The notes: generated from the sequence alone by a model not told the origin. Shown: positions 3,115 to 47,045, counted from the first letter of the stretch. The stretch: 64,000 nucleotides of DNA from Anthoceros angustus (GCA_010909165.1 MU008150.1:496001-560000); one strand, 5' to 3'. A program made the numbers and translations.

Positions 3115-3785
3115 GGCTGCGAGGCGGCGGCTCGTGGAGTGCAGTGATCGGCGCGGTGAGGCTGCGCGCCCGCGGCGAGCCGTGGCGGCGCGTGGCGCGA
3201 GGCCGGCGGCGCGCGCGCGCGGGCAGCCGCGCGCACAGCGAGCGGCGCAGGCCAGCGCGGCGGCGTCGCGCAGGCGCGGCGCGGCGGCGGCGCGGCCGGC
3301 CCCGGCCGCGGCCGCCGCGCGCGCCAGGCGCGGCGCGGGCCAGCAGGCGTGCCCGGCGCGCGGCGCTGGCCGCGCCACGCGAGCCGCGGGCGCGCGCAGC
3401 CCGCGCCGCGCGCCGGCCCATGAGCGCGCCCAGCCGCAGGCCTTGGCGCCAGCCAGGCGGCGCCGCGGCCCGCCGCGCCTTGCCGCAGCGCGCGCGGCCG
3501 CCAGGCTTGGCGCGCGGCGCGCGGCCGCGCCAGCGCCGAGCGAGCCTTGCGGGGCGCAGGCGCCGCGGCTGGCCGCGCGCCGGTAGCGCGCCAGCCGGCG
3601 GCGGCGCCTTGGCAGCGGCAGGCCCATGCGCCCGCGTGGCGTGCGGTGGTGGCGCCGCGCGGGGCGCGTGCGCGCGGCGGCGCGGTGCGCGCGGTGGCAG
3701 AGTGGGTGCGGCAGTGCGGCGCGGCGGCAGGCGGTGCGGTGAGCGAGGGCGCGGTGCCGCGAGTGAGCGAATCGATCGGCGGATT
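3115..3785. other. Extremely GC/CpG-rich low-complexity tract in the Copia 5' leader
   Basis: Almost pure G/C (GCGCGGCGGCG...) between PBS and gag; produces spurious Arg/Ala ORFs in all six frames. Confidence 0.85.
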
Positions 3786-6700
3786 ACTCGGTGGAATAGC
3801 GGCACAAATACAGTCGGTGGTATTTCTTCTTTGACTTTTTAACAAGGCGAGAGTGTTTTATCGTATCGATTTTTGAGTCATGATGTCTTCATCATCGAGC
3901 GTCATGTTCAATATCGAGAAGTTAGATGGTACTAACTTCCGTTCGGAAAGAACAAGTGTATAATGTTCTAGTAAAAGCGGATCAAGCCCATAAAGTTGTT
4001 AGGCGTCAAACGGATAGTATGACCGGGATGAGTGGCGGGACTGGATGAGCTTGCTAGATCTACTATCATGCTAACATTGTCAAAAGCAGTGTACTTCAAT
4101 GTGAAAGATAAGACCACGAGTTACGGTGTGGCGGTATGTGACTGTATGAGAAGCAAAGTGCGGCTTCTCGGTGTATTGGTTGAAAACGGTGGTGGACTTG
4201 AAGATGAAGGAAGGGACGAGGATGTCCGATCATCGAATGATTTCAATACCATCTCAGTTTCCGATGAGCTATCGTTCGAGGAAAAACGCCGAGTTGGGGT
4301 TTACCGGTGCACATCATGGTGAGAGGGAGGTCCAATGCGAAGGAAGCAACAGAGAGGAAACCTCCGTAGCAAATCTCATAATCGTAACAAGAATGTGGAG
4401 TGTCACTATTGTCACAAAGGGTCACTTCAAAGAGAGTCGAGAAGTTCAAAAGGACCAAGGAAGAGAAGAAGCGGGGCGACAAGGCGACTTGCATCGAGTT
4501 GGAAGAGTTAAACTACATTGAGGACGGAGATGTCCTTATCTCTACTTGAATCTTGCACAATTAACTTGAGTGGATAGTCATTTATTACGCAATTGGATAA
4601 TTGACTGCGGTGCATCTTTCCATGTTACTCATAGAGAGTGGTTTAACGTATGATGCTACAAGGAAAGGATCGTTAGGCTTGGAAATAACTATGCATGCGG
4701 ATCGCGGGCGTGGGTGATGTGCAACTCAAGTTTGACAACGGATCTTCATTCATCTTTGAAGGGCGTTAGGCATGTTCGAAGTTGACAAAGAGCATGATTA
4801 GCGCGAGACGGTTGGATGATCTTTGGTTACCATCTTTGGTTTTGGGGATCACTCTTGGAAGATCTCCAAAGGTTCTCTTGTGTTAGCTCGTGGATCGGTG
4901 GCACTTTGTACTCACTTGGTAAACCTTTATCAAAGATCATGTGATCGTGTGACGAGCAGCAAATGTTTCCTTGTGGCATTGCGGTTAGGACATATGTCTC
5001 GAAGGGAATGAAGGTTTTATCTCGTTACGGTTATATCCTGTTCTTAACTTCTAATCTCTCGATGTGTGAGCTTTGTTTATATGGGAAGCAGACAAAATCA
5101 TCACATCGAACACGAGGTAAAGTAGAAGTAAACCTCTTGAGTTGGTTCACGATGATGTATGTGGACCTATGCCTCTGCATCATTAGGCGGTGCCTCTATT
5201 TTGTCACTTTCATAGATGATTTCTCACGCAAGGTGTGGGTTTATCCTTTGAGGAAAAAGGATGAAGTTCGGTGTTTGAAATTTGTCACCCTTGTAGAGAA
5301 TCGATCATGATTGAAGTGTCTAAGGGCGGATAATGGTGGCGAGTATGTTTCAGCTTTCGGTCATTGATTCCAAGGGAATCAAAAGAATTATTGCCGTATA
5401 CTCCTCCACAAAATGGTGTGTGGCGGATGAGCAGAACCATTCGAGGAGAGGATCGTGGTTTTGTTGTCAAACTCGGATTGCCTAATGGGTTTTGGGCGAG
5501 CGATGTCTGCAGTTCATCTTATTGATCTCCTAATAAAATTTGAGCGAGTTCGAGGAGCTATAGTGCGGAAAGAAACCATCCTACAAGCATCTGAGTGTTT
5601 GGGTGAGGCATCTTGCCATGTTCCAAAGAGTTTCGGGACAAGTTGGCACCTAAGTCCAAGAAATGTATTTTTCTTGGCTATGGTGATTACGGTGAGATGG
5701 GATACCGTTTGTGGGATCCGAGGCTAGAAAGGTTGTTCGTACTAACGGCGTGTTCTTCAATGAGAACAAGATGCGAAGCCTACTCCAAGCGTGGAGGTGC
5801 GAAGGGTGATCTTCAAGAAGATGGACATGATCATCATGGGGTTGATACGTGGTAATGCGGGAGCACATTCCTCCACCTAGATGAACCAAGAGTCGAACAA
5901 GCTCCTATAGAGGTGCACAGTGCCCGTAGGTCGAGGCGGGGATTACCACCTCGGGGTATGATCCATCTGGATTATGTTATCTTGATTGTGGGAACCCTCT
6001 TCTTACAAAGAGGCTCCATCAGCGAGTAACAAAGAGAAGTGGGAGAAGGCCATGCGATCGAAATGAATTATGCATAAGAACCAAACTTGGGAGTTGGTTG
6101 TTGCCTAAGGATAAGAAGGCACTCTGGCAAATGGGTGTACAAGATGAAGGTCATACTTGATGGCAAACCAAAGTACAAGGCACGATTGGTTGCTAAGGGT
6201 TTCAAGCAACAACGGGCATTGACTTTGATGAGATTTTCTCACGGTAGTCAAAATGACAACTTTGCGATGTGTTCTTGCTTTGGTTGCGAGGATGATATGG
6301 AACTTATGCGGATGGATGTCAAGGCGGCATTCTTGCATGGTGACCTTCAAGAGGGCGTCTACATGCAACCGAAGGTTTTGTTGAGAAGGGCAAAGAGCAT
6401 CGGTGTGAGTTGAGGAAGAGCCTTTATGGTTTGAAGCAGGCACCAGTGGTATCACAAGTTCCACTCATTTATGCTTTCTCAAGGCTACAAGCGTGGATGA
6501 GGATCATTGCCTCTATCTGAAGCAAGCTAAGGATCAAAGCTTGCTCATTTTGATCCTCTATGTGGATGATATGCTAATTCTTTGGGAGCGATCTTGATGA
6601 GATTTGTTGAAGTCAAAGTTGAATGCTCACTTTGAAAAGCAGACTTGGGAGGCGAGCCATATACTTGGCATGCGTGTCGTCGGAGCAGACATAAGCGTGC

Positions 6701-21814: not shown

Positions 21815-22694
21815 CGGAGATGCACTCGCTATGGCCTCGGTGCGAGTCGAGTGGCGCGCTGCCCTCGCCCACCTCGGCCGCCTTGCGCCGCAGCGTTGGA
21901 ACGCGAACGCTAGCGCTGCCGGCGGTCTGCTCTTCCTAATACATTAACCTCAACGGTTATGTGGAAGCGATTATTGCACATCGTGCTCTAGTAGTTATAA
22001 CCGCCATGAGTGCATTGTATAAATAGCCCAAGTGCTCATCAATAAAATATCCTTTTCTTTATGGTATCGAGCAAGCAAGTCCGCTTTGGCTCTCAACGCC
22101 CCGCGGCTTCCAATACCCACCCGGCATGGAGCGCGCCCGGAGCAACGGCAGCGGACTTCATTGATCCTGAGTAGGCTACCATGCCTCGGCGGCGCACCCC
22201 ATCGAGTTCGCCCAAATAGAACGCCGACCGCACATACACGCCGCCATGGACCAACTCCACCAGAGTGTATCTGCTGCATGGGAGACACTTTTGTCATCCG
22301 ACCCAATCCTTCACTAGAAGTGAGAATTTCATCAAGAATCCATGTAGTAGACTCCTACCGCTCAGAAGGCAACCTCTCCAGGTTCCGTAATCCCACAACC
22401 TCTTCCGAGGATTATCTTAAGAGTCAATTAGTACTAATCAAATCGCAGATGGAGGCACTCGCCATGGCCTCGGTCGAGTCGAGTGTTGCCTCGGCCCACC
22501 TCTCGCCTTTGCGCCAGGAACGAACGGCGTTGCAACCTCGTTACCGCGACGCCTCCGCGTCTGCTCTAATACATTAACCTCAACGGTTATGTGGAAGCGA
22601 TTATTGCGCATCGTGCTCTAGTAGTTATAACCGCCATGAGTGCATTGTATAAATAGCCCAAGTGCTCATCAATAAAATATCCTTTTCTGCTTTA
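21815..22694 (+). repeat. Tandem duplication (~630-bp period) of Copia LTR + PBS + leader
   Basis: LTR copies 21945-22061 and 22575-22694, each followed by TGGTATC(A)GAGC and the same leader. Confidence 0.85.
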
Positions 22695-25600
22695 TGGTAT
22701 CAGAGCAAGCAAGTCGCGCCCCGTTTGGCCTCTCGAACGCGCCCCGCGCTTGGCTTCCAATACCCACCCGGCATGGAGCGCGAGCAACCAGCGACTTCAT
22801 TGATCCCGGTAGGCTACCATGCCTGGGCGCACCCCATCGAGTTCGCCCAAATAGGAACGCAATCGCATATACCGCGACCGTAACTCCACCAGTGTGTCTG
22901 GTGCCACGCTGAGACACTTTTGTCATCCGACCCAATCCTTCACTAGAAGTGAGAATTTCATCAAGAATCCACAGTAGAGACCCTACCGCCACCGCAGCGG
23001 CAACCTCTCTGTTCCGTAATCCCACAACCTCTTCCGAGGATTATCTTAAGAGTCAATTAGTACTAATCAAATCGCAGATGGAGGCACTCCTCGTCGCCAT
23101 CTCCAACCTGCCTGTACACACGAACACTGAATCAAATGCATTGTGAGTAGGCGAATGCCTAATTTCGACCCACTAGGTCAGCATACTACAAAATTGCTTG
23201 CCAGGAGACTTACCCGTCTTGCACAACGTCCAACTATGGCTCAAATTGTAAACACCACTAAGGTAGAGTTTAGAGATCGAGATCGCTTCACAGGAAGCGA
23301 CTATGACATCTAGCAGATGTGCATCACTGCGCTGCTGGAGGAGCATGACCTCATGGGGATAGTCGACGGCACTATAGCCTAGCCGGTCACCACATCAAAC
23401 CCCAAGAACTCCACTGACCATCGCCTTGACCAGAAGGACAAGCAGCGCAGATCCTCATCTTTGCCATCGACAAAAGTATGATGCAACATACCAGTGGCCA
23501 AGCCACTTCTAATGCCATTTGGACAACATTTAAAGACATATTCCAAGCACAAAGCAGCATGTCTTTAATCAACACCACAAGGCAGTTCTATTCCTTGAGA
23601 ATGAAGGATTCCGATACCGAGGAACATCACGTGAACGTCTTCAGATCGCTCAGAGCAAAACTGGCTTCAGGAGGCACCGTTATTTCAGAACTACAAGCCG
23701 CAGTTGCACTACTAACCTCCTTGCCGCCTGCATATAGAACCTTTATCAGCGGATAGAATTCGGCCATACGTGCAGCAATCCAAGCAACTGCAGCAGGACA
23801 GCAGCCTGCTTATACCTTCACCGAAGTGGTTGCAGCCCTTCTCGAAGAGGAGTCCAGCATATCTGTCAATCACAAGGCAGCGCCGTCAAGCACCCATGCA
23901 ATGTTCACGGCGAGAGGTCGCGGCGCCAGGAGAGGAGGCGGCCGCGGATACTCCCAAGGACGAAGGCCCTCATCTCAACCATTCTCCGGCGGTAACACGC
24001 AGCCCGACAAGAGGACCAAGGGCCCGTGCAATTGGTGCCGAATCCCCGGGCACTACGAGAACGAGTGCAGAAAGAAGCTTGCCGGCGAGCCACGCCGTGA
24101 CGCACCTCGCAATGAGTCACATTTCACCAGCGTTAAGTCAACTTCACCTACATCTATGCTAGTCAGATGTCCGACGCTACTGTGATGTACTGCAATGGTT
24201 CCTAGACTCTAGCACAACCATATCTCATAGCAGAAGGAAGCTTTTGAGTCTTATCATGATTCACCAAAGACATCGACGTCCTTCTAGGAGATGATAGTTC
24301 TCGCAATCGCAGTAATCGCAACGCCTCCGTAGTTATCAAATGGTGAAGATCTTCTCATTACTGGAGTCCTGCACGTTCCCAGCATGACAAAGAACCTGCT
24401 ATCGGTACGCAAATTGGCAACTGAGCACAACCTGGTGATCACATTCCAGGGTAATCACTGTCTCATTCACAAGCTTAACGATCCTTCTAAAACAACTCTT
24501 GCACATGGCCTTCCATACAACGACTTATACCTCTCAAATATCCAGTCTACTTCCTTGCTGGTCGATGCTCAAAGATCAGGTCCTAAGTCTTTATCCAAGT
24601 TTGATTCTCTCCTTTGGCACTGCCGAGCCGGTCATATGAGTGCTCGCTATCTCAATTCCATGTCCAACGCAGCCACGTATCGAGACCCAATCTTAGCCAA
24701 GATATCCTCAGATCTGTACTGTGAAATTTGCCAGTATACCAAGCTAAACCAATTGCCTTTCAATGATCCCTTACCTACAAGGGCAAAACGCCTGCTTGAA
24801 GTCGCCCACTGATATCGGCCCCATGAGCACATCCTCCTTTGGTGGCCATTCCTATTTTCTAACTATTCTGGATGAATGGAGCCGGTATTGCCACATATAC
24901 TTTCTCAAGCACATGGACCAGGCCCTTCAATGCTTTCAAGAGTTTGTGACACTAGCAGAACGGCACACAGGACTTCAAGTCAGCACTCTTCGCACAGACA
25001 ATGTTGGAGAGTACATCAGTCACTCCTTCCAGGAGTACTGCACATCCAAAGGGATAAACCGGCAGCTCACAGTCCCATACACGCTAGCACAAAATCCTTT
25101 TGCAGAAAGACTTAATGATCACCGGAGATATCTCTCTACTCAAGGCGTGTGCCTCACATAAGGATATTGGTCAAGCCGCTTCGATGACCCACTACATCAA
25201 AAATCGATCACCAAGGAGCTTCCAAATATTACGCCATATGAGCGCTGGACAGGACAGAAGCCCTGCATATCTCATCTCCGTATCTTCGGCTGCCCAGCAT
25301 TCGCCCATATTCTAGATGACCTGCGAACGAAATGGGACGACAAGAGTAAGAAGCTGTTGTTTATCGGCTATTCTGACCAATCTAAGGCATACAGATTAGT
25401 TGACCCCTCTACCCGTCAGGTAACCTTATCACGCAGTGTACATTTCCATGAAGCAACTCTGCTCAATACTTATCTGCAGTCGGTGTCCACTTCCACACTT
25501 CTTCCTGCTCCCAGCATTTCTGGCCATTCACCTTCTTCCCTTTCTGACCTTGAGGGGGAGACATACAACCCCACAGACTATGAGTTTGTTGATGATATGC

Positions 25601-27487
25601 AAGGTCAGACAGGTAATCCGGTTCCACCACAACCACAAGCTGCACTTCCAGCCCCAATTCAAGCACCTGTCCAACCCGCACCATTCCAACCACGAATAGG
25701 TCACCAACTAATCAACTTCACCGCCTCCTATGCCTCCGACTAGAATGACATACCTGAACCACCTATACCACGAGCCCGTCTCAGAGATCCACCACCGCCC
25801 CTCCACGATCCCATTGGAAGGATCCACCATATCAGCCTGGAGACTCCCTGACTTCCAAGAGCAACACTGATCTAGCTCCAGCTCCCGAGGGCATGCAACC
25901 ACAGCACACTCATCAGATCAACGTGGCTCTACACCAAGCTATGTCAGCTATTGAAATGCACGACGTGCCTCAGTCAATTGAAGAAGCTTTCAAGTCCCCT
26001 GAGTGGACTGCAGCAGCTAAGTCGGAGTATGACTCACTTATTGCCAACAAGACATGGATACTTACCAAATTACCACCAGGCCGCAAGCCAATATCCTGCA
26101 AGTGGACATTCAGGAGAAAATTGAATCCAGACGGTACTGTATCAAGGTGCAAGGCAAGGCTAGTCGCCAGAGGCTTCAGCCAAGTTCCTGGCTTCGATTA
26201 TGAGGAGAATCGACTCTGTACGTCCAAATCCACATCCATCGATACTTGGCCCGCAACAACACCGCCTAGACATCCACCAAGTCGACGTAAAGACTGCTTT
26301 TCTATATGGTACACTCAATGAAGACATTTACATGCTCCAGCCCCCTGGTTACATCAAGGACAACAAGAAGGTTTGTAAGCTCATGAAATCTCTACTGGAC
26401 TCAAACAAATCATTGCTGTATGGAACGAAACCAGACCAGACGTGGTCCGCTTTACCTCTAGTCGATCCAGCTGCCTACCTTCTTAGACAGAAAGAGCACT
26501 TTGTCATTATTACCTTGTACGTCGACGACAATTTCATCTTTGGAAGCTGTTCTCAGATCATCCAGCATGTCAAAGATTTACTTGCCAAGGAGTACGAAAT
26601 TGTTGACATAGGCCCTCTTAAGTATGCCCTAGGCGTCCAGTTTGAGAGAAACCTAGCAGACCATTCCTTCTTCATTCATCAACAACATTATGTAGACCAG
26701 TTGTTGGACAGGTTTAACTTCAAAGATGCCAGACCTGTTACCACACCCATAGCTGCAGGTGAGAAAGTGTCAGCAGAAGACTGTCCAGCCACACCAAAAG
26801 AAGTCGAAGAAATGAAATCCATACCCTATAGTGAAGCTGTAGGCATTCTGTTGTATAAGCATTCTGGACACGTCCAGACATCTCCCAGGCTGTGAACATA
26901 GCATCCAGATATCTCTCCAATCCTGGTAAGGCCCACTAGATATGTGTCAAACGAATCCTTAGGTACTTGAAAGGAACTGCATCCCTTGACTTTCCTATGT
27001 GACAGAAAAGAAGCTCAGACTACATGTTTTTCGGGACAGACCGGCCGGTGATCCTCGATGCAAGAAAGTCGGCTTCAAGATAATGCACCACGATCAACGG
27101 CTCACTTGTCTCTTGGGCATGCAAGAAGATGCCGACAGTATGCCTCTCATCCACTCAAGTAGTACCGCAACTTCCCGGCAAGAAAAGAAATTCTCCGGAT
27201 ACGGGGTTCCACGTAAGGCCAACGAGGAGGCGATCACCCATAGTACTGCGCGACACCGCCTATCGCCATGACTCTCAACCCTGTGATGCATGCTAGGACC
27301 AAGCACGTCCAGATACAACACCACTTCATCTGGCAAGTTGTGAGCAGCAAGCAAGTCACGCTTAGCTATGTCGCAACTGAGGAGAACACCGCCGACCTGC
27401 TAACCAAAGGACTCTCAAAGGCACCTCACGAGCGGCATGTGCAAGCAATAGGGTTGATAGCACGAGAGACTTATCATGGAGGGGGAG
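22575..27487 (+). mobile_element. Second Ty1/Copia element with a short (~120 bp) non-canonical LTR; no LTR directly after the PPT
   Basis: PBS TGGTATCAGAGC 22695; gag (RDRFTGSDYDI*, zinc knuckle CNWCRIPGHYENEC); GAG-pre-integrase (LLWHCRAGH); integrase (YFLTILDEWSRYC); RT (CKARLVARGF, VDVKTAFLYG, LYVDD); RNase H (HARTKHVQIQHHF...ADLLTKGL); PPT-like GGAGGGGGAG at 27478-27487. Confidence 0.92.
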
Positions 27488-27975
27488 CCAACTTCCGGCT
27501 CCAGGCAAGGGACACTGAAGACTTCCACAACTCGAGCTGCTGGGTTTCTGCGCAGCTCAGCACGCAACTTGGCGGTGGAGTGACAACTTTGTTTGCCGAG
27601 CGAGCAGTGGAACTAAAATTGTGTTACAACACAGCAGATGATCGGGTTGTTTCCCCCTATCAGAAGCCCCTAAGACTCTTGAAGAGGTTGATTCAGCTGT
27701 GTACATTAGAGGGAGATTGGGTGCCGGACGGGTGCGCAGGATCGGGATCTGGTATGATAGCAGCTGTTCAGTTATGCCGTAATGTCATTTCTGTTGATGT
27801 GGATCCCAGGTGTGCTCAATTCATGGATCTTCGAATCAATTCCATGGACAACTGGCCGACGGAAGAGGAGGAGGTAGGCGAGGAGCCTGGCTATGGAGGT
27901 GGCAAGACGTTCAATAAGGAGCCCATGGTGAACAACATGGCTGGTGCCCGGGGTTCATATGTGTCGTTGAAGTAG
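27488..27975 (+). pseudogene. C-terminal half of a beta-class N4-cytosine/N6-adenine DNA methyltransferase (N6_N4_Mtase-like)
   Basis: SPYQKPLRLLKRLIQLCTLEGDWVPDGCAGSGSGMIAAVQLCRNVISVDVDPRCAQFMDLRI matches the HPTQKP..LL.RLI...T..GD.VLDPF.GSGTT..AA....R..IG.E pattern (motif X/I); acidic tail; in frame with the upstream RNase H. Confidence 0.85.
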
Positions 27976-29309
27976 AGACCAACGAGGAAGCCGGAGACCA
28001 AAGGTCATATGGCATGTGGTGAAGCAGCTGCAGGCAACAACCCAATGGTCCTTGGGGATGCGGAGCAGCAAGTGAAGGATGCAGAGGAGCCCCCTCATGC
28101 GGGTTGGCTTGACATGGTGGGGATGTAGGATTGGAAAACTTTGCTCCACGATCGAGGTGTGTCGTGTGACGGTGGATAGGCTACGTGTTTGCTCGAGATT
28201 CGGTAGGAGAACGGTGTGGGTCTTAAGCACCCACAGCCGGTGGTAGCTGGCACTTTGGTCGAACGTGCATGCAAGCAGGCAATGAACACAACAAACACAT
28301 CAAAGGTCAAGGTCCTCGGAGGCATTTAGACAACCAACACGGTCTTGATGGAGCACGCAAGCCAGGAAGCATGGGAGTGGTGCCGATTCCGGAGAATGTG
28401 TTCAGCAGTTGCTTGACGTCGGTTATTTGATGAGCGAGATCATGGGCGTCTGTTGCTACACACAACCAGTAAGGTATGGATTTCATAAACAACGGACCAC
28501 CAATTTCCGCGATGGCGCGTCCACTCTGCAAGACAAAGCAGAATGTAAAGTCGCGGCCTCGTCTGGGGCCTCAACGCCCCCAGTTGATTTTTTTTCGGGG
28601 TAGTGGAGGTGAATTTTTAGAAAGAGAATTGACCTTTTGGTCATTGTTTTACTCAATATAGTAAAATTTATTACAATACAGTAGAAAACATGCCAGGTGG
28701 GGTGAAAATGATCTACCATCAAGGTTGAAAGCAGGGCACTAGAGTAGAAAAAAATGACCACCAAGTGAATACCAGGTGCATCTAGTAGAAGCTCATTCTA
28801 GAAATCCCACCAAAATCGCTAACCTGGCAAAAACATTTTCTGTTAAGTAATGTTTATGCGGATCCAGGATATACAAAAAACCAATAAGGAAACCTTTTCT
28901 TTGCAGAGTTTCCTGTATATCCAGAATGGCATGCATTCCTGCCAATCCTAATCCATCTCCACCAGCGGCCCAAAGACGGACACCTGCACAGCCCGGACGA
29001 GTGCACGCGATTGAAACTTAAAAGCAAACAACTGGCCAGCAACAATTTCAAGTAATGAAGAGTAAATACCAGAATAGATTGAACTCTGCTTCAACAACAA
29101 TGAAACCTACAAACAACGAAAATTAGCACCCAAATAGTAATTAGGCTGATACTAGAAAACACTGGGAATAATCATAACAACAAATACTTAAGCAACGATA
29201 CTCACCTTATTTTGGGAAATTGACTGTACAATTATGCAGATTGAAATTGTAATTTTCACGACTACTTGGCTTGATTGGCACTTGTCCAGCATTATCATAG
29301 TTGGCAAGA

Positions 29310-30250
29310 AATTGATGGACGTGGGTAGACAAGGCCAAAAAACTCAACCTCATCCATATTACACTGGCCAAGCATTTGCACTATGAGACATTTGAAGAGG
29401 TTCAGGAACGATATCCCGATTACTGCATGGTGAATCAAATTAGTAACTTCTAGCCTGCCTTCAAAAATCTGGTCAGTCCTCGATGAACACTTAGCTATAC
29501 CCAAATCAGAGTTTCTCTCTTGTGGTGCTTCTTGTCCTTATAAGTCATGGAAAGTGGAGGCCTTAACACCGTACATTCGAATAGTAGAACGTCCGGTAGC
29601 ATTTGACTGGTGGGTTGTGTCTTTCATGTCTGCAGCGTGCCAACACTTGCCTTGAGTGGGGTGCCCTACCTGAGAACTTCAAGGAGCACATGTTCAAGGC
29701 CAGAGCTTGGAAGCAGATGGAGGAGTCGCAACGTGCCTTGAGATCAACCACATCGAGGATCGATGACCATCGTGAAACTCCAAGCCGAAAAACCCAAAGA
29801 AGGGTCGGGATCTGTGACAACATAGTGAACATGGCCCGGTTGTAGAGCCTCGATCATGCTTTGTTGTTAGACCTCCCTAAAGGCTTGGATCTAGATCCCC
29901 AATCTCGAGAGTATGACACAAGATTTACCAAGGCAGAGTTTGAAGGGGTCATCATGCAGTTGAAAGGCATCACCACATCCCAGGTATTTCGTATTGTGGT
30001 CTTCCATTCTCCGGATGACACATCTATGGTGAGAGAAGTGCTAATGGAAGCGTGTAGGGGTGCTGTGACGACATGTTACTGACATAAAATCAATGTGACA
30101 GCATTGTCAGAGGACAGGCTGTACGATGTAGGGGACTTTTTCACTTGCGCTGCTGGAAGCTTGGATAAGGATTGTGTGCCTCAACCGTTTGTACTCAGAC
30201 AAGCATAGGGAATCGAAGCCATCTTCGACATCATTTAGGGCACCCGAATG
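29310..30250 (+). pseudogene. Decayed ORF ending in the N-terminal (motif IV) half of a beta-class DNA methyltransferase
   Basis: LLDLPKGLD...EYDTRFTKAEFEGVIMQL...FRIVVFHS...CY*HKINVTALSEDRLYDVGDFF resembles DPPYG...WD...VF...W.K.N...L...E. Upstream protein-like frame WTWVDKAKKLNLIHITLAKHLHYETFEEVQERYPDY; stops and frameshifts. Confidence 0.6.
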
Positions 30251-30352
30251 AGGGGAGTGTTGTGACCCATACCGGTAGCGGCACATTAGGGCACGCTTCA
30301 CATGCGTGAGCAATAAATAATTATTAAATGTGGTAGATAGCATTTACTGCAT

Positions 30353-30474
30353 TAACCTCAACGGTTATGTGGAAATAGTTATTGCGCACATCGTGCCTAG
30401 TAGTTATAACCGCCATGAGTGCATTGTATAAATAGCCCAAGTGCTCATCAATAAAATATCCTTTTCTGCTTTAT
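30353..30474 (+). repeat. Third copy of the short Copia LTR (solo LTR or displaced 3' LTR)
   Basis: Matches 22575-22694; flanked by TGCAT on both sides (30348-30352, 30475-30479); no PBS after it. Confidence 0.85.
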
Positions 30475-30489
30475 TGCATCTCACTTTAG

Positions 30490-31190
30490 AGGTAAGAGAC
30501 TCAATCGCTGAGTTGAGAAAATGAGTTCCCCTATCGCTCATCAACTCCAAAGGACACCCATACCGAGTTATGATGTTTACAAAGAGAAACTTTGCCACTG
30601 TTGGCGCATCATCGTTTTTTGTTGCTTCGGCCTCTACCATTTTTGTGCTTGTTGCTTCGGCCTCTACCATTTTTGTGCTTGTTGCTTCGGCCTCTACCAT
30701 TTTTGTGCTTGTTGCTTCGGCCTCTACCATTTTTGTGCAGTAGTCCGTAGCCACCAAGATATATTGCTTCCTTGTCCATTTTGTGGGTGGCTTGATGGGA
30801 CCCACAAAGTCTATGCCCCACTTCTCGAAAGGTGCCAAAGGTAGGATATAAGTAAGAGGCCATTATGTTGACAAAGTTGGCCTCCCAACCCATTGGCACG
30901 CATCACACCTCTGAACAAAATCCCACACATCCCTCTGCATCGTGGCCTACCGAAAGCCTGCACCTAGGATCTTCTACATGGTAATTTGTACCGAATAATG
31001 GCCTCCGGCTTCTTCTGCATGCAAAGCTTCTATGACGAGAGTAGCTTCCTTCTCTTCCAAACATCGTCGGATCTTCTCACATGGACCAAGCTTGGATAAG
31101 ACCCCATCTCTTAGACAATAAGGCAGTTTTGTGAAGAAAAATAACACGCCCTTCCCTCAACAAACCATCAAGCATATCCCATGCTCTAAG
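30490..31190 (-). mobile_element. Gypsy integrase fragment (H2C2 zinc region + rve core) with an in-frame 30-bp x4 tandem expansion
   Basis: [16 protein letters not shown]...YILVATDYC([10 protein letters not shown])x4...[11 protein letters not shown]; repeat units start at 30621, 30651, 30681, 30711. Confidence 0.9.
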
Positions 31191-31269: not shown

Positions 31270-32179
31270 CCCTATCCTGCATGCACGCTTGAAACATATC
31301 GAGATTCAATTTCATTACATCCGCCAGGCTGTCCAGCAAAGGATTATCCAGCTTACCTATGTCCCTACAGCCCAGAATGTGGCTGATTTGCTAACAAGAG
31401 GACTCTCCAAATTATTGCATGAGCAACATAGGCAGTCGCTGGGTCTAATGGAAACAGGGACTCATCAGAAACCTGCAAGCAGAGCTGATGCTGCGGGTTA
31501 GCAGCCTGGCAGCGCATACACTATGTCCCTTGGAGCAACAACACACACCAGCGCACACATCAGCTACATGCAGCTGCTCCCTGGATGAAGCCTTACAGCT
31601 ATAGCTAGTCGGCAGTAGTAGCATGTTACCTTCTCAACAGTCGTCAGGCAAGCGTTTTTGAAGACAAGCAGAAGCTCTTGGTCTGTGATGGACGGATCCT
31701 TGCGGGTCCTAGGTCTCTGCTTCTTCACATCAGGCACGAGTTTTGACGGCATCCGAGTTTCCATTTTCCTCACCGTTTGTTCTTTGGGGGGGCCTGGTCT
31801 CGCAGCGGCAAGCGTGTTGCGCGCTCCGCCCCGACGCGATTAGACCTATGCAATTTTTAGCACCGCGATTGCGAGCTCCGGGGTGTGCGCAGTGTTTTTC
31901 AGCAGCGCGTTCGCCATTCAGCTCAGCAATCACGTACAGCGACAGAGACTATGTGTGGACGCGATTTCGCTTTAAAGTTCAGCCATAGAAGCTGCCGCGT
32001 CCTATCTTATCTGGCTTATTACCAAGTTCAGTGAGAGGGGGTGTTAGATAATATCCTTTATCTTCATCCAGCCCTAACTTGTCATAATCTACGACACGTT
32101 ATTATCACTTTAGTTTTTAGGGCATGAAACGGTTTGTCGGTTCACACATTTTCTTGTACCACCTTGAGACTCTTTAACA
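31270..32179 (+). mobile_element. 3' end of a third Copia element (RNase H, 3'UTR, PPT, LTR)
   Basis: KHIEIQFHYIRQ...ADLLTRGL; PPT GAGAGGGGG at ~32033; LTR TGTTAGA...TTTAACA 32042-32179. Confidence 0.8.
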
Positions 32180-33004: not shown

Positions 33005-35101
33005 TTAGTAGAGCTGTGCTGGTAAGCGAGGAGACGGAACTGCTACCAGTGGCTGCTTCTTGCGAACTGTGATACCAGAACTCTCCGACATGTCCAGGTT
33101 CTCTGGAGTCACGCCTTCGGGTAGGTTCCAGTTGAAAGATTGCACCAGTCTTCCCACGGTGTAGTGGACAGTCAAAGCTCCCAAGGTGACGCCCTGCCCA
33201 TGTGCAGCAATGAACCTAAAGTCATCAAGGGAAGCTTTTGCACGACTGCAGCCTAGCCTGCCATATAGACGAGTAAAACAATGGGGGATTTCTATGTCAC
33301 AAGTAACATGATGTACCGGGCAACGACGTCTTCCTGCACCGAAGGGAAGTAGCTGGTAATGTGCGCCTCTGAAATCCACTTCGCTGCATATCAAGAGTTT
33401 GCACGTCGTCACGATGAATGTCTGCAGCAAGAACAGACAAAACTGTCTCTAGACTTGTAGAGCCCAAATACCTGTTGATGAATCTGTCAGGATTGAAATC
33501 CAAGGGCCGGTCCCAAACGTCTGGATTTCTGGCCATTCCCCAGGCATTGACGTACAGCATTGTGTTGGCAGGAATGTCGAAGCCAGCAACCTGGCAAGCC
33601 TCGGAGGCGCAGTGGGGAATAAGCAAAGGCACAGGAGGATGTAAACGGAAAGTCTCCTTCACCACCGCCTGAAGGTAAGGGAGATCAGGGATATCGGCCT
33701 CGGTGACCACCCGATCCCTCCCCACCACAGCATCCATCTCTTGTTGGGCGGTTTTCAGCTGCTCTGGATGTTTCAGCAATTCTGCCATAGCCCACTCAAT
33801 GCTGAGCATGGCGGTGTCTGTCCCGGCGTCGTACATAGTCTAGAGAGCACATGAGCCATATTAGTTGACACTCATGTATGACTTTGTTCCTGAACACGAT
33901 GACAGAAAGCAGCCCAGCTGGATTTCGAGTCCTGGGACCTGCTACTGCTTACATTGAGGATGCCTTTCATCTCGTTGTTTGTCATGGTGCCTGCTCCGTT
34001 CTCTCCCGGCAAACTGAGAAGAACGTCCAGGACATCCCGAGCTGCTTCAGCACCTGGCTCTAAGGTTCGCAGGTACTGCCGGTGCTCAGCTATGACCATT
34101 TCGTAGAAAGCATCCAGTCGTGCATGGGTTGCTTGCATATCACTCTTAGTCCTGATTAGTCCGTCCAAGAAGCCCAGATAGGGGACAAAGTCTTCGAAGA
34201 GGGGAGACAAGGCCAGCCGGAGAACTTCTTTCACCAGAACCTTGAACTCTTCTGCCTGCAGGCACAATCTCCAAGATCGTTTCCAATTTACACAATCTTC
34301 TCTTCTCTTGCTACCTTGTCAACTACGAGAATTAAATGAACATCCTCACACAAACAAACCAACCTGCTCGGGGTTCGAGACGAAGGACTGGTCGGACTCC
34401 CGCTCCGCCTTCGCTCCGTATGCGAAGAATCTCTTGCTGAAAATGGTTAGGGTGCTGACGTTAAACAGAAACAGAGCCACCTTGTCATGGATGTTGATGC
34501 AAGCTTGCTTGCCCGCTTCAGTCCCGCCAACTTCGTCCAAAATTGATCTCACCATGCCAGCAACTTCCTCCTTTCTCACAACCTGCGACTGCTGCACTCG
34601 CCTGGGGCTGAGGATATGCGTGGACAAAATCGACAGCAGACGCTTCGTGTGTTTGTTGTAGGGGCTGAGTGCCACAGTGTTTTCCTGGAAGACAAGGTAC
34701 TTAGAAGCACCAGAGACGGGCCGTGAAGAAAAGATGGCGTCCCGCTCCTTGAGAAACTCCCGTGCCATGTCGGGGGAATCGATGACCACGGCCAGCCGCG
34801 ACCCCATTCTGAAGCTCACCAGAGGGCCGTACTGCCTGCAGAGATCGAACAGGACCTGGTGAGGCAGCTTGTGGGGATTGGCGAAAATGGGCACCAGGCT
34901 TCCCAGCACAGGCCATCCTCGAGGCCCAGGAGGGAGCCTGGGTTTCCTGCTCACCGACTTCCACAGAATGGTACACAGAATTGCAGCCCCTGCCAATCCT
35001 GCCAACACGAGCTGCCATGTCGCATTGCTGGAGCTCCAAGAGGAAGTGGCTACGGGTCTGAAAAGAAAACGGAGGTGCCCATCTGCACGGAAGCCCGCCA
35101 T
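33005..35101 (-). CDS. Cytochrome P450, CYP71 clan (A-type), 5 exons, ~554 aa, apparently intact
   Basis: Exons 35101-34364, 34255-33953, 33839-33472, 33383-33317 and 33193-33005, all GT-AG with consistent phase. TM anchor + PPGPRGWP, AGTDT, KETFR, PDRF, heme motif FGAGRRRCPG. Confidence 0.93.
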
Positions 35102-35249
35102 GGGGCCGGCCCGGCTCCCGACAGACACTAGGACCGTTTCCACTTCTCCGGGACCGACCCTTGGATTTCTATTTCCTTCCTGGCTTATCTGTTAAATTAA
35201 GTAGTGTCAACTCTCCGAATTAGGAGAAACACAACAAATTCCAAGACCT

Positions 35250-35425
35250 CTCTATTCCGACAACCAAGGCGCTATTTCACTCATCTACAATCCCAAGTTC
35301 CATGCGCGCACCAAGCATATCAAAGTATAATTTCACTTTATCGGAAAGGTGGTCAAGGACAGTAAATTCGATATCTTATATTGGCTGACGGAGTAGATGA
35401 CAGCCGATATCCTTACCAGTTCAGT
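35250..35425 (+). mobile_element. Copia RNase H remnant
   Basis: AISLIYNPKFHARTKHIKV*FHFI...TADILT. Confidence 0.75.
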
Positions 35426-37199
35426 TAAACACCAACAACATTGCGCATCCATGGCGGTTCAGTTCAGTTCAGTTAAACAGCGTTTCGCCTCACGCTATTT
35501 TACATAACATTTCACGCTCACATTAATCTATATCCTGAACATTCACATTATTATCCAAGCAAGCTGGAGACATGCTCTATTTGAACAGTGTCAGTGCGAG
35601 GTTCTGTTCGCGCTAGGCCATAGTGCACCATGGCCGTGCGTGAGGGGCCACGAACCCATGATAGGAATCTTGCCAGATATAGCGACACGATGGCCTCAAT
35701 ATTGCCGTGAACCAAATCGAGTTGGCCGGGTTTCTTTTTTTCCATAGTTCGGATGTTCCACAGGAGACGTTGTCATGAAGGCCACTATGTGCCACTGTAA
35801 TTCGTGGAGAATCTTCTCGGCACCAAAATTTCAATTTCCCGCTCATCACGAAACTCGTTCTATGTTACTACAAACCAAGGAATGTTTCGGAGATGACATT
35901 GTATGTATTGGCAACCTTGTTTAGGGTGTACCAGGCTTCCTTGCACGAGTTCACATTACGTGAGACAACCTAGTTAACCAAAGAAGAAAGGAAACTAGCT
36001 GCTGCTCAACATACGAAGGAGTAGTACCTTATACTAAAGCTATAGTTCGTGAAAGTGTGTTGAAGAGAATACATGCAATTCTTGTGAAACTAGTACTTGT
36101 GCTAGTCATAAATCTTGATCTCTCTAAGGAGGAGCTGAAAAGGGAGAGGGAACATGAGACATCACACATCAAAATCGTAGCATTTAACAAAGAAACATAA
36201 CGTCCACGAAAGGTTGCAGGCCAGCATGGAAGTTGTACGCAAAATTATTTAAATATATTGGGCGAATAAGCTCTCGCACATCTGGTTGAAGTAGTGAATG
36301 CCATAAGGGAAGCACTATATCATAAGATGTTGACAAGTGGTGCGAAGATTAGAACCAAAGAACTTCAAGCACGTGTAGCACGACGAGAATCGATTGGCTT
36401 TCCTAGTAGTTGATTATGGCTCATCTTCACCCATAAAAAGAAAGCAAGTACAGGGGATGAACTCAACAACACCCTTTGACTACTCTATCCAAGAGTACTA
36501 CGGCGGGATTCGCTATCAACCCTGTCACGCAAGGAGTCGAAGAGCTGAAGGAAAAGTTGGTGAAAGGAAGCAAAAGCTCGCCAAAACCTGAAGATATAAC
36601 AACGTTTGGGTAGAAAGGGGTTTCTCCGATAATAAGGGGATTTGGCTAAAATCCCGTCTTTTCTTAGGCAAAAACGCCGCGGCGGGATGTTTTCCTGGTT
36701 TTTAGCATGTACACTCGGCTTGGAATAGAGTGATCAATTCTAGGGTGCCCCATTCTGCATGTTTTGACCGCTAGCGTATCTCCATGCACACGTAAATGAG
36801 CCATTTAAGAAGGTGTAAATGCAATGAAATATCTGTTTTGATAGGTTTTTCAGCATGTCTCCATGTCATCCAAAACGTGGGGTTTGCTCGGCCGGCTTGC
36901 CTCGGATATGAGTGCGCACTCACGTTCCTCATCTGAGACAATTATATATTGGTCGCTGTCCAGAGAATGATTAACATATGATATTCTTGGACAGATGAAG
37001 TTTGCAAATCAACTGCAATGCAAAACCGCTATTTTTCAAATATAGGTGCTACTCCTTGGTGGTGTGAGAATCATCTCTTCCATCTACCTTAGGGATCGCA
37101 ATTATAGAGGACAAACGGCCATTCTGCCGTTTTTTTCCGTCTAGTCCGTCGGATGCCTGGTTGGGGGCTCTCTTCAAACATGCCTTCAAAAACCCCGAT

Positions 37200-39040
37200 T
37201 GGGTTAGGATCTCCAATACCTCGTCCACGTGTCTGTCTCGCAATTGGTCCAGAACTAATGCTTTGGCCGACATGGACTCGCGGATCATCCTCAACTCGAA
37301 CATGGTCTTAGGTTTTAATATCATTGACCATGACATCATTCTGAAACGTTTCTCCTTGCGCCTCAAGGTGGTGGGTTGGGCCCTTATCGTTATTCCCAGC
37401 TTCCGCACTTTGCATATGGTGGAGTTTAAATAGCTTGGTCTTTATGAGCTCTTGGGTTCTCACATAAAGCGTGCTCTCTCGCGTCAAGGCAAATCCAAAT
37501 GAAAGAATAAAGGTCTTCGCCAGCACAAGGCGATCGAGATGCTTTGAACGCTTCCTCCTTTGACGTAGAGCATTCTTGTCCACACAGTTGGGTGGCAAAA
37601 TCTCTTCGGGTATATAACCGCCTTCAAATGCATTGCTATTCTCCGTTACCCACCATTGCACAACAAGGTACGGTTCGTCACAACTGAAATCTAGGTTCTC
37701 CACCTCTGCAACCCAAAAAGGCCTATTTTGGTCATCCGCCTGACATGCAACGGTAATCATATGGCCACGCTAGATCTCAGCCACATCTCCATCTAACCTT
37801 GCTTTTTCCCTTGCCCTTGCTCCCTTCGGAATATAATTACCAAGGTACATCTGCCTGGGCCCTACGTTCTTTGATATTGGAGCCGGGAGAAGCAGAACAT
37901 CTGGCACAAGGATGGTATCGCTATTTCGCTCAGCCTCTACCCGATTGTACCATTGCCATGGTATCTCTAGCTTATGGTCGACTCCACTAGAGATCTTCGC
38001 ACAAATCAGAGCTTGTGACTCCCAAAAGCCGTTCCACCATACCTTATCGGCACTGGTAAGGTACTTCTGCATCGGCTCTTCGAGTGCCTTCCTGATGCCC
38101 TCCAATGATCTATGAGGGTTGGGATCTTGAGCTTTCCCATGTACTTACAGTGCACACAGAGATGCCCCACAGATGGGGGTTTCTGGGATGAGGCGAATAA
38201 ACTCAAGTCCCTCATCGGGTTCCCAGTGAGGCGTGGTTGATAAGTATTTGCCTCGAAGCACTACAACCATTGCCCCGCCTGCGCGTTCTCTCTCGTGATT
38301 TTAAATTGATGTTGATAACTGTGCTTGTTCAAACGTCCAACTGCAACATCCCGTGCCCCCCTTTCACCCATCCCAGAAGGCCATACATACCTACGGAAAT
38401 CGGCAACCCTGGTAATCACTTTCACTTCTGGATTTTGGGTTACGCTTGTTCAATAAGCGTCATCAGAGTTGGTAGCGACATCACCTTCTTATGCCTGAGA
38501 CTTTTTGAGAAACAAGAGAACATTTGATCCACTAAATCTTGGGTGTGCCCTACAAGAAGGAATCCAACTTTAACCTTCTCGAATACCCGCTTCGTCACCA
38601 GCATACTCAGATATGCAAACAACAGCATATTCTTGTTCCCCCGCGCGGTGTTGTCCAATTGAAGGTAAAAGGTCATTGGCAAGACACTGTCATAGTTGAG
38701 TATAATATCTTGAATAATATATATCGTCAGGTTGGCATCATTGCGGATGCTCGGATAGTTGACATACACCTTCGTCTTCATAATATTATTGTATACCAAA
38801 CAACCAACAACATGAACACAAATTAACCCATCGGCGAAATCTTTTGGAGGCCCTATGAAGTGCGGGAGCTCTGTCTTGCTCTGGTCCATTCCATCTATGG
38901 CAATTCCAATATATCGGCTGGGTTGTCTCGCGCACTTTAGCCGATGCTTCGCTAGCTTCAGTCGCTCTTGTTTAATTGAACTCTATGCGACCGCAGTTCT
39001 CTCTCCAAACGTTCTGCCAAAGATCCATGACGATGTGAGA
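37200..39040 (-). mobile_element. Sola-like (DUF7869-type) DDE transposase pseudogene
   Basis: IAIDGMDQSKTELPHF...YLQLDNTARGNKN...GFLLVGHTQDLVDQMFS; downstream ORFs with RPFWVAEV...VVQWW. Termini not identified; GCGCAC-rich tract 39050-39350 upstream. Confidence 0.75.
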
Positions 39041-41954
39041 TTCTGAATTTGCAGAGGGAGAGTATAAGTACCTGCGCGCCCTTGTGCGCGCACTTGTGCT
39101 CGCATCAGCCCAGTGCGCGGACTAGGGCCCGCACTGGGTCAGTTCACGCACAAGTGCGTGCACTTGCGCGCACACTTGCTCAGCGCGCGCACCAGTGCTC
39201 ACACCGGGTAAGTGCGCGCACTTGCCCGATGCCCGCACCGGTTCGCGCACTTACACACGAACCTATGCGCGCACAAGTTCGCGCATTAGTGCTCGCATCG
39301 AGCACGTGCGCGCACCCAGTGCGCGCCCAAGTCTGCGCACTTGTGCGCGCATATTATAGTGTATTCTTGGGATATTTCCAGCATATGGTGATGCCAATAG
39401 GATATCTTAGGAATATGCCGATGCCAAGGGCTAGTATATATAGACGATCATAGCATATTTGATTTGTTTGCTTGGTTATTTGTTGAGGAAGTGCTTATAT
39501 AAATGCAAGTGCTTACCTCATGCAACAAGCGATGGAACTTCCGGCCCTTTTGAGGAACCCTGGGACACTTGGGAGCTAGTCACTCCTAGGACTTCGGGGA
39601 GTCCCGAGTTGCGCACCGATGGGCGCGCACCTTGGGACTCCTCCCGGCGCCCCTAAGACCACCAGGACTCTTGACGCACTTGGGAGTTAATTCCTCGAGA
39701 AGACCCAACCAACTCAAATCGAGTCTCGAGGTATAGTTTTGACAACCTATATGAGGAATTTTAAATGAAAAAAATTAAGATTTTTGGGTCTTCTTGGGCG
39801 GAATTGTGCGCTGAAATTTCCAGCGTAATTTTTGAAAAAAAAATTAAGTGGACAATGTTACATTAAAATGAGCAAAACGAGAGTCCATTATTGGGAACGG
39901 TGATACCACAACGGCCCAGTCGGCTACCCCTATTAGTCAACCGTGCACACACACCTTTCTTCCCCTTTCATCGAATACTCGAGTATTGCGTGCATGCGCT
40001 GGGGTTTTGTTAGTCGCGAGTACCAAATACTCAGCCATTAGGCACTTGAGCGTTCTTACAATCTCACGCATCCATGGCCACTATTGTAACTATCTTGTAT
40101 ATTGGTCGTGCAAATGGTGCGTATCTTAGTATCCCGAGTCCCCATTTTGGAAATGGGAGAAACCATACCACATGAAGAAAGCCCCATTGCTTACGACTCT
40201 TGCTACGTGTTGGTCGACATTGATTCCTTGGCTGCAGGTGGCCACGAGTAGTGCACCGTTTGGGGGCCTCCTTTGCATGTGAATCCCCGGCCTCGCATGC
40301 GCACACAATTGCACCTTTTGTCAGATGAATTCCGCTAGTAGCGCTTACATACCACTCCATGGTGGCATAGGTGCTTGGTATTTTTTTGCGAGGAAAACGC
40401 TCTACATTATAAGGGATTGCTATTAGATATTACAATAATACAATTGGAGACTCCGTTTCCCTAGGATCTGGATAGGACCATTCTGAGAGAAGGTTGTCAT
40501 CAACACCATGCTCCAACGTATCTTGTGCGATGCAAAATAGCTTGGCCTTGAACTTAAGCAAATGACATAGCAAACATCAAATTGAACTTATCTGGTTGAT
40601 GGCGACATGAGTCCATGATGTTCCACATATATCAGGCATTGACAAATTGAAAAAGGAGGATGGTAAAGGGCAAAAATAGCTTATGTCGTACAAGGGACAT
40701 CGCTTGTCTTGTCGCCTGAATAAGAAAGAAGCCATCCACAAGAGAAATGCCAAAAGGGGGAGCCAGCACGCTCAACAGCTGGAGGAAGCGCACCATAGCC
40801 CACTTTTGCAGCCCCTGCAATGCCAAATCCCAGTGGCATGCCTCCACCTACTTTGCCGCTAAATGGGCCACAATACAAAATTGCCTCAACTAGCGTTAGA
40901 GCTCTGAAATGTGGCAACTCAGCAAACTCAACAGAATTTCATCAATTCCACCCAACAGGCCCCGCAAGTAGTCTCAATGCTAACACCCTTCAAAAAACAC
41001 ACTTCCTGCAACAAGAAGCCTAGAAAGAAGGCGATGAGAAACCAACCCTGTGTCCACCACAAAGCAATCCCCAGAGACTGCAATTGGTGGAGCCGGTTAG
41101 CCTGCATTGGTGCTTAGTGGCTCACGATGCTCATTCAGCATTAGATTGAGCAAACAGAATCGGTCAAAACCCCATTGTTGTCGAGCGTTGGTACCGCAAG
41201 CTTTGTCGCTTTTAAAGAGAATTTGGTGTATTCTTCAAACCCGGATTTTCCTCTCATGCTTCAAATAATATTTGTCAAAGGTTAAGGACATATTTCTCCT
41301 TGGAGCATAGTACGTTCATCATAGCTCAAAGGTATAAGTACGGTCCCCCATCCTAAAAGTAAACGCAAAGTTTCTTGTTTGCAACGTTCCAAGCTTGAGA
41401 GACAACTGCTCCATGGTCACATGGATGCCTGGTATTGTTTTGCGAGGAAAAATGGTCTACATTATAAAGAACTACAATATGGTATTACAATGGTACACAC
41501 TACTAGAAAAGGTGAGTTAAATATTGATATTGTATTGCTCCAAGGTGTAACATCATTTGCTTTTGGTGGGGCACGTGGTGTTGCACTCGTGTTACAATTG
41601 TGTGACATGAGTGTAACATAGGGCCAGGGTAGGCATGGTGCCATTGCGTTAGATAGTGTTCCTGGCCCGGCGGCACACTGGAATACACACGTGCGGGAAG
41701 GGCACTCTTTATGGGAAAAAGGTATGCACTGCGGTAGTCAATGAAGTCCCCTTCGACAACATCCCCTCAAGTCTACCTTTGTCTTTCCAACTCGGGAATA
41801 GCCCAGCTTTGAAGGATGTCTGGCACACACCTTTGCCTCTCGTCATCTAACGATGGTTTTGAAGCTTGAAGTTTGAGGTCTGCCACATAGCAGGCCGACG
41901 CCAGCGTCCTTGCAACACCCATGACTTCGTACTCATCTTGTTTGAATATCCGAG

Positions 41955-42242: not shown

Positions 42243-44221
42243 TGCTACAAAGGGACCAGAAATATTCGTTGACACCTTTTTTTCACACTCACACTTTTGT
42301 TGGTTTACTTGTGTTGAGTGTCTTGGTTCTCTTGCATGTTTTGCTGCCTCCACCTTGGGCAATGGATCCAGTCTCATAGTTTATGTTCAACCCCAATGTG
42401 CCTCATCAATTCTTGGTGGCAAGACTAGCTATATGGGACACTCGACCATTTTCACAATCTGCCGCAAGATAGTCGCCATAGTGGCCATCGATGTGTGGGA
42501 GTATGAGAACCCTCAGTGCTAAATGGTCGAGTATTGGGTACTCACAATTGAGAACCCTATCTTGCGCAATACCGATTATTTGGCGGACGGGGAAGAAAGG
42601 TGCATGTACGGGCGCACAATTGAATGCACCCTCCAGGAGGGGGATGCACACAAGTCAGCTGAGATAAGAACTCCACAGTTAAGTAGCCTGCAGGTGGATC
42701 TGTACCAGGATAAGGTGCCATCCCCTTAGTGGTTTGAAAGATTTGTAGATTGTCGCACTATGTGGGCGCACCGGCCTCCCTTGTGCGAGGTCTACGATGT
42801 GAGATTTTCTACTTGATAATGATAATGATAGGTGTAGCCGACGATACGTTGTAGTTAAACCGTTCCCAGCAGTGACTGGTGGACTCTCGTTTGCTCATTT
42901 TAATGTAACGCGTTGCCCAATTAGAACTCTTGTGTCCCCGGCAGCCATAATTTTATGGATAAACTACTCCTCTGTTTTCAAAAACCTCAAAGCCAACATT
43001 TTTAGTTTTAAAAGGGTTGTTGCTTTTGGCCCATCTCCAAAAGTGGAGTGTGTCACTACTCCTAAGAAGACCTTTTAAGGGGACCAAATGTGTAACCATG
43101 CTTGTCAGATCAACCTACTTGCGCGATGAAGAATTTGGAAAGCATAACGTGTAAAAGTTTTGTGCTTGTGGATATTCGATATCATTAATAGAAATATCCA
43201 TTATCAATTGTACTTATAAGATTGCTGGCTTTTGGGCTTCCTTGAATCCGAATTGGAGCGGTGTTGGCCAATGTTTCTTGATGAAAAGGACAAGGTTCCC
43301 AACAAGAAGCCTAGAAAGAAGGCGATGAGAAACCAACCCCGTAGTCCACCACAAAGCAATCCCCTTGACCGCAATTGGTGGAGTTGCTACCCGCATTGGT
43401 GCTTAGTGGCTCACGATGCTCATTCAAAGACAGATTGACAAATGGTAATCAACAAAACCCCATTGTTGTCGAGCGTTGGTACCGCAAGCTTTGTCGCTTT
43501 TAAAGAGAATTTGGTGTATTCTTCAAACGGATTTTCCTCTCATGCTTCAAATAATATTTGTCAAAGGTTAAGGACATATTTCTCCTTGGAGCAGGCACGT
43601 CATTAGCTCAAAGGTATAAGTACGGTCCCCCATCCTAACCTCAAGTTTCTTGTTGCAACCTCCAAGCTTGAGAGACAATCGCCCATGGTCACATGGATGC
43701 AGTATTGTTTTATGAGGAAAATGGTCTACATTATAAAGAACTACAATATGGTATTACAATGGTACACACTACTAGAAAAGGTGAGTTAAATATTGATATT
43801 GTATTGCTCCAAGGTGTAACATCATTTGCTTTTGGTGGGGCACGTGGTGTTGCACTCGTGTTACAATTGTGTGACATGAGTGTAACATAGGGCCAGGGTA
43901 GGCATGGTGCCATTGCGTTAGATAGTGTTCCTGGCCCGGCGGCACACTGGAATACACACGTGCGGGAAGGGCACTCTTTATGGGAAAAAGGTATCATGGT
44001 AGTCAATGAAGTCCCTTCGACAACATCCCCTCAAGTCTACCTTTGTCTTTCCAACTCGGGAATAGCCCAGCTTTGAAGGATGTCTGGCACACACCTTTGC
44101 CTCTCGTCATCTAACGATGGTTTTGAAGCTTGGAAGTTTGAGGCTGCCACATAGCAGAATAGGCACTTGACGTCCCTTGCAACACCCATGACTTCGTACT
44201 CATCTTGTTTGAATATCCGAG

Positions 44222-46762: not shown

Positions 46763-47045
46763 GAGTGTTCCATTATGGGACTCATGGTGCGCGCAACAGT
46801 CGTATCCCAAGACTGTCGTGTACGTGTCACGAGTGTTCCATTATGGGACTCATGGTGCGCGCAACAGTCGTATCCCAAGACTGTCGTGTACGTGTCATGA
46901 GTGTTCCATTATGGGACTCATGCTGCGCGCAACAGTCGTATCCCAAGACTGTCGTGTACGTGTCATGAGTGTTCCATTATGGGACTCATGGTGCGCGCAA
47001 CAGTTGTATCCCAAGACTGTCGTGTACGTGTCACGAGTGTTCCGT
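46763..47045. repeat. Minisatellite, 68 bp x4 plus a partial copy
   Basis: GAGTGTTCCATTATGGGACTCATGG...CGTGTCAC at 46763, 46831, 46899, 46967, 47035. Confidence 0.95.

Follow-up and report, generated by a model that had tools for sequence, protein, structure and literature searches.

A cut and permuted methyltransferase-like gene, probably a one-off fossil, beside a decayed Copia element in Anthoceros angustus

The locus

A 64,000-nucleotide stretch of the Anthoceros angustus genome (GCA_010909165.1 MU008150.1:496001-560000), here called the window and numbered from its first letter, carries a decayed Ty1/Copia retrotransposon on the plus strand at 21.8-30.5 kb. Between the end of the polymerase gene (pol) of this element and a downstream copy of its long terminal repeat (LTR) lie two pieces of a methyltransferase (MTase) gene, likewise on the plus strand. 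The stretch contains no working gene; the pieces add up to a single eukaryotic gene of the family PF01555, with an intron and with its two halves in swapped order.

The first piece is the half that binds S-adenosylmethionine (SAM), corresponding to the C-terminal part of intact relatives (C-half, 27544-28062; residues 217-382 of the relative P0001). It carries the motifs P-Y-Q-K-P and D-G-C-A-G-S-G-S-G and matches the Pfam profile PF01555 (E 6.5e-10, 39.8 bits against a cut-off of 26.7); motif I (G-x-G), following P-x-Q-K-P, is kept and aligns with that of the relatives. Upstream, the C-half is joined to the tail of the Copia RNase H in a single open reading frame (ORF, 27268-27975, plus strand). 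This frame passes stop-free from the A-D-L-L-T-K motif of the RNase H C-terminus through a purine tract into P-Y-Q-K-P and G-x-G-x-G, and reaches a stop at 27973. The in-frame run-on is unremarkable: by our estimate, the chance that one of the three frames stays open over about 35 codons is ~6%.

A spacer without recognisable homology on either strand follows (28063-29330). Its ORFs have no Pfam match, and no homology was found between it and the flanks of the relatives. Next come a conserved upstream exon (exon A, 29331-29471), a phase-0 GT-AG intron (29472-29635) and the remaining, N-terminal half of the gene (N-half, 29636-30205; approximately residues 13-206 of P0001). Exon A is 57-59% identical to matching ORFs that stand upstream of the main ORF in the contigs L001 and L005. 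The splice donor GT[AGC]AGT occupies the same position in the window, L001 and L005, and the window and L001 share an acceptor AG directly followed by CGTG. The intron is retained and has the same orientation as the Copia transcript.

The N-half bears the sequence D-L-P-K-G at 29870-29884, the position of motif IV. Decay is evident from three in-frame stops in ~400 codons, one in exon A (29451) and two in the N-half (29843 and 30080), a density comparable to that of the Copia pol; the last of these is a TGA in place of the W in the W-x-K-x-N of the relatives. The N-half alone has no Pfam match, and its connection with the family runs through the relative P0012, which covers the full PF01555 profile (N-half versus P0012, E 6.5e-7), and also through P0014. 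Hidden Markov models (HMMs) of the family found exactly one N-half and one C-half and no other family piece in the 64 kb; a weak exon-A-like match at 58064-57462 (E 0.055) was disregarded.

A preliminary description of this locus had reported an RNase H frame running past the polypurine tract (PPT) into a SAM-binding half, a D-L-P-K-G half in a decayed ORF downstream, and a copy of the same element's LTR after it, and all three observations stand. Some of its details are revised here. The LTR, given as 120 bp, measures ~123 bp and has two 5' copies owing to a tandem duplication; the gene extends beyond the two halves to an upstream exon and intron (29331-29635); and of the two halves proposed for a search against PF01555, only the C-half gives a match by itself.

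Intact relatives and the order of the halves

Searching the C-half with HMMER against 1.84 billion representative proteins returned 1075 matches at E <= 0.001, only 11 of which reach E <= 1e-10. The best five (P0001, P0002, P0003, P0004 and P0007) lie on separate contigs of one Logan assembly, SRR33208241. Their DNA is ~67% identical to the window, and these relatives therefore represent another organism or old paralogues. P0001, P0002, P0003, P0007 and P0012 exceed the PF01555 gathering cut-off. In a word-indexed protein search, the C-half yielded 27 candidates, none of them significant, and P0001 as query retrieved only P0001 and P0003; a metagenome scan with the family alignment gave one weak locus. 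Upstream of P0007, contig L004 has two tandem paralogous ORFs (3361-4050 and 4534-5091), with a faint match to Helitron_like_N (E 0.0085).

P0001 (446 aa) and P0003 contain both halves in a single uninterrupted ORF (L001 893-2248 and L002 2135-3136, respectively). By tblastn, residues 7-204 of P0001 correspond to window positions 29618-30190 (E 6e-41) and residues 218-382 to positions 27577-28062 (E 1e-47); the N-half also aligns with P0003 (E 7e-35). Motif IV precedes motif I in one polypeptide in the relatives, whereas in the window the half with motif I comes first and the two are 1.6 kb apart. A single cut in the window gene falls between the positions of P0001 residues 206 and 217, within a variable linker rich in Ser and Gly, and the halves have changed places.

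An assembly error, arising from the repeated LTRs or from tandem gene copies, might account for one of the junctions or for the exchanged positions of the halves, and the region does contain a tandem duplication of 633 bp as well as three copies of the LTR. However, the C-half, spacer and N-half include no internal repeat able to cause a false join, and a false join between LTRs would leave no spacer between the halves. The junction flanks have no sequence in common, and neither overlap nor duplication was found between them. An artefact of this kind is considered highly improbable.

Fold, motif IV and enzymatic potential

The AlphaFold model of P0001 residues 60-350 (pLDDT 82, pTM 0.83) was compared with known structures by Foldseek. 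It matches beta-class DNA amino-methyltransferases at E 1e-12 to 1e-9, with CcrM, M.BceJIV, M.MboIIA and M.RsrI at the top and M1.HpyAVI, the bdelloid N4CMT (8s9m/8s9n/8s9o) and M.PvuII among the other matches. Sequence matches to solved structures cover the SAM-binding half only. As modelled for an intact relative, the family has a predicted beta-class amino-methyltransferase fold. Judged from the sequences, it is eukaryotic and intron-bearing, with members in a fern and in further eukaryotes.

Motif IV sets the members apart. In the alignment, most bacterial and phage rows read D-P-P-[YF]; P0012, P0014 and the fern sequences P0013 and P0018 (Adiantum nelumboides) read D-[IFA]-P-Y; P0001, P0003 and P0007 read D-L-P-R-G; and the window reads D-L-P-K-G, which fails the catalytic consensus (D/S/N)-P-P-(Y/F/W). 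Since the beta-class fold here comes without its defining motif IV, methylation of DNA at N6-adenine or N4-cytosine (N6A/N4C) would have to be regarded as unproven for the D-L-P-R/K-G branch. For the window copy such activity is impossible, and no enzyme can be made from it because the ORF is cut and the halves are swapped. The term bacterial-style, applied to the locus at first, is apt for the fold, given the matches to CcrM, M.BceJIV, M.MboIIA and M.RsrI, but not for the gene, a eukaryotic one in which a spliceosomal intron is conserved. The further designation as an N4C/N6A DNA methyltransferase is not borne out, as motif IV is neither (D/S/N)PP(Y/F/W) nor TSPPY.

Compared with the known beta-class PF01555 enzymes (CcrM, M.BceJIV, M.MboIIA, M.RsrI, M.PvuII), the present sequences are alike in Pfam match, fold, P-x-Q-K-P and G-x-G. 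They differ in motif IV, where the consensus aromatic residue is replaced by a basic one in the window and its closest relatives. They also differ in gene structure: the present family has spliceosomal introns, and the window copy is split, permuted and interrupted by stops. The Marchantia proteins MpDN4MT1a/b, whose TSPPY motif is characteristic of N4C enzymes (bioRxiv 10.1101/2021.02.12.428880), and the bdelloid N4CMT belong to the same Pfam family, and N4CMT structures are among the fold matches. Nevertheless, the present family lacks TSPPY and is only marginally similar to N4CMT in sequence (E 0.47), and the window copy is dead.

The Copia element and its downstream LTR

The 5' end of the Copia element is present as tandem copies of a ~633 bp unit (21819-23089, plus strand) comprising ~120 bp of upstream sequence, the LTR, the primer-binding site (PBS), the leader and the start of gag. 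The duplicates (21819-22460 and 22452-23089) are 83% identical. A ~16-nt GCAG..GGAG..GCACTC motif in three copies bounds the duplicated region, which suggests unequal exchange at a short repeat. LTR copy a (21942-22061, plus strand) is followed by a tRNA-iMet PBS with a 1-nt deletion (22062-22072), and LTR copy b (22572-22694, plus strand) by the canonical, exact tRNA-iMet Copia PBS TGGTATCAGAGC (22695-22706).

The decayed gag-pol (23143-27470, plus strand) consists of many ORF pieces with frameshifts and stops. Its RVT_2 domain is recognisable at 26200-26895 (Pfam PF07727, E 8e-28), and the RNase H tail ends near 27465. When sister copies were sought with the reverse transcriptase (RT) ORF of the element, the best match was 43% identical, in a protein collection that does not include the Anthoceros angustus genome. 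Just 3' of the pol end is the PPT-like purine tract GGAGGGGGAG (27478-27487, plus strand); a search for an LTR remnant 3' of this tract found none.

Downstream of the methyltransferase pieces, LTR copy c (30350-30473, 124 bp, plus strand) is 93-94% identical to 21942-22058 and 22572-22701, and its first base is the first base common to all three LTR copies. It is separated from the N-half by 144 bp of no recognised identity (30206-30349), which do not match the sequence upstream of the 5' LTRs. No PPT stands directly 5' of this copy: the last 29 bp before it are 52% purine, and the sole purine tract is 2.85 kb upstream. A comparison of the bases outside the LTRs revealed no 5-bp target-site duplication. 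A degenerate PBS and leader after copy c was dropped as a candidate, its similarity not being significant against shuffles.

These features bear directly on the idea that a Copia sub-lineage took up the 2.85-kb piece and retrotransposed with this passenger between pol and the 3' LTR; a Copia located within an array of MTase genes could, for instance, have acquired it by read-through. The piece lies on the same strand and is bordered by the purine tract at the end of pol and by an LTR copy, the outer DNA is unrelated, and the ORF continues in frame from RNase H. Capture of C5 methyltransferases by charophyte and dinoflagellate retrotransposons is also on record (PMC5890265). The swapped halves, on the other hand, mean that nothing functional is carried. 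The sense-strand GT-AG intron is kept, whereas passage through RNA tends to strip such introns. A replicating composite LTR element needs a PPT directly before its 3' LTR, and at copy c this is missing, as is a target-site duplication. If the tract at 27478 were a working PPT, the 5' LTR should contain the insert too, and the insert is absent there. LTRs do flank the methyltransferase piece on both sides, but the 5' end is confounded by the tandem duplication. Finally, the closest relatives have no Copia neighbour: no Copia protein was found near any of the five on their contigs of 1.9-8.3 kb.

Uptake as a Copia cargo, one of the two origins offered in the preliminary description, is thus unlikely in view of the cut, the permutation, the stops, the intron, the missing PPT and relatives that stand apart from Copia. 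Even more doubtful is the version in which a sub-lineage transduced a unit-length piece of an MTase locus and still spreads with it. If this were true, the fusion of RNase H and SAM-binding half would be expressed, and the element would carry the first amino-methyltransferase-fold passenger of a plant LTR retrotransposon.

Neighbouring elements and the DUF7869 gene

A truncated integrase (rve) fragment of another retroelement (30490-31100, minus strand) abuts LTR copy c. Within it, a 30-bp unit is repeated 4-5 times (30589-30768) and adds a repeated peptide to the integrase frame. A search upstream of the Copia for the rest of this integrase found nothing, and a single insertion can thus not be proved from continuous flanks. 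A lone C-terminal RNase H fragment of a different Copia family (31289-31501, plus strand) stands 0.8 kb past the LTR copy. With copy c abutting a truncated, inverted integrase and this stray fragment nearby, the area is a mosaic of broken elements.

Farther on, 8 kb from the methyltransferase pieces, lies a transposase-like DUF7869 gene on the minus strand (38440-38982, with further ORFs probably at 37049-38105). It has a counterpart beside a distant family member: P0014 (789 aa, metagenome contig L006) is encoded 4 kb from a 580-aa DUF7869 (PF25273) transposase-like protein, and the window DUF7869 matches this protein at E 3e-49 and Pfam PF25273 at E 2e-38. From such sequence neighbourhoods, distant PF01555 family members appear to travel with transposase-like genes. 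A literature search returned no mention of DUF7869 and no report combining PF01555, ParB and a transposon.

Palindromes of the GTGCGCGCA type have 13 exact matches in the window against 0.25 expected. These short, GC-rich palindromes form clusters at 39073-39362, directly beside the DUF7869 gene, and at 46787-46999, with one more at 35303; the clusters may be binding-site arrays or subterminal repeats of the DUF7869 DNA transposon. Inverted repeats of 20-51 nt, 80-100% complementary and ~2.4-3.0 kb apart, occur at 39857-40097 and 42465-42909 and might mark the termini of a small non-autonomous DNA transposon. An apparently intact multi-exon cytochrome P450 gene occupies 33005-35143 on the minus strand (PF00067, E 1e-42 and 1e-18). 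Because it stands between the DUF7869 gene and the methyltransferase pieces, linkage of these two within the window is not demonstrated.

The DUF7869 gene and palindrome array, 8-9 kb off, raise the possibility that the methyltransferase piece derives from a DNA transposon that carried two MTase genes in tandem, inserted into the Copia between pol and the 3' LTR, and later lost all but the inner halves of the two genes. A precedent exists in the PAG2 gene of the red-algal Plavaka elements (Bostrychia, Chondrus), a PF01555 accessory gene on cut-and-paste elements that also have a ParB-like accessory protein and inverted-repeat arrays (bioRxiv 10.1101/2025.02.11.637652). P0014 beside its transposase-like DUF7869 neighbour, and the window DUF7869 gene with its palindrome array, resemble this arrangement. 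PAG2 is fused to a SET domain, of which none was seen here, and the window fragments are without linked transposase, inverted repeats or ParB-like sequence. The N-termini of P0014, P0018 and P0019 found no ParB-like match in the window, the contigs of the closest relatives contain no such region, and the ParB-like nature of the P0014 N-terminus itself was checked and not confirmed. Terminal inverted repeats were found neither at nor near the ends of the piece, the intact-looking P450 gene intervenes, and it would be coincidental for the trimming to have stopped at a Copia boundary at either end. A nested DNA transposon is accordingly given little credence.

Origin of the arrangement

The window copy is probably the fossil of a methyltransferase-like gene associated with transposons, rearranged in a one-off event. 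The other origin offered at first, recombination of the Copia with a separate MTase element or gene family, fits the evidence. The piece would have arisen by rearrangement at the DNA level in transposon-dense DNA rather than as a passenger of the Copia RNA cycle. Two routes might lead to the observed order. In the first, the Copia would have inserted into the linker of the MTase gene, followed by (tandem) duplication and deletions. In the second, a unit-length piece of a tandem or circular MTase locus would have been joined in. Both the order of events and the one-off status of the arrangement are inferred.

Several observations weigh against this reading. The piece starts no more than ~80 bp from the pol end and stops exactly at the first base common to the LTRs. 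On either side of the LTR-to-LTR span the DNA is unrelated, which gives the whole the appearance of a mobilised composite element. Both cut ends fall in one linker, for which two independent breaks have a chance of ~1 in 10 by our estimate. Moreover, each DNA-level model considered requires that the 3' LTR behind the purine tract was lost in an event of its own.

Significance

Methyltransferase-fold sequences beside pol are known from other retrotransposons. The DIRS1 polyprotein contains an inactive methyltransferase domain with degenerate catalytic residues (PMC4738411), and DNMT genes occur in charophyte and dinoflagellate elements. The window resembles these in having an MTase-fold sequence next to pol; they differ in that the known cases are intact, recurrent and of other MTase classes, whereas the window gene is broken and permuted.

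A methyltransferase adjoining a Copia pol is not sufficient for calling it a cargo. The window copy, scrambled and dead, carries little weight by itself. It provides a further record of a eukaryotic branch of PF01555 that is poorly described and has introns and D-x-P-R/K-G instead of DPPY. Several copies of this branch occur in a single eukaryote sample, a fern has related sequences, and one distant member lies near a transposase-like gene.

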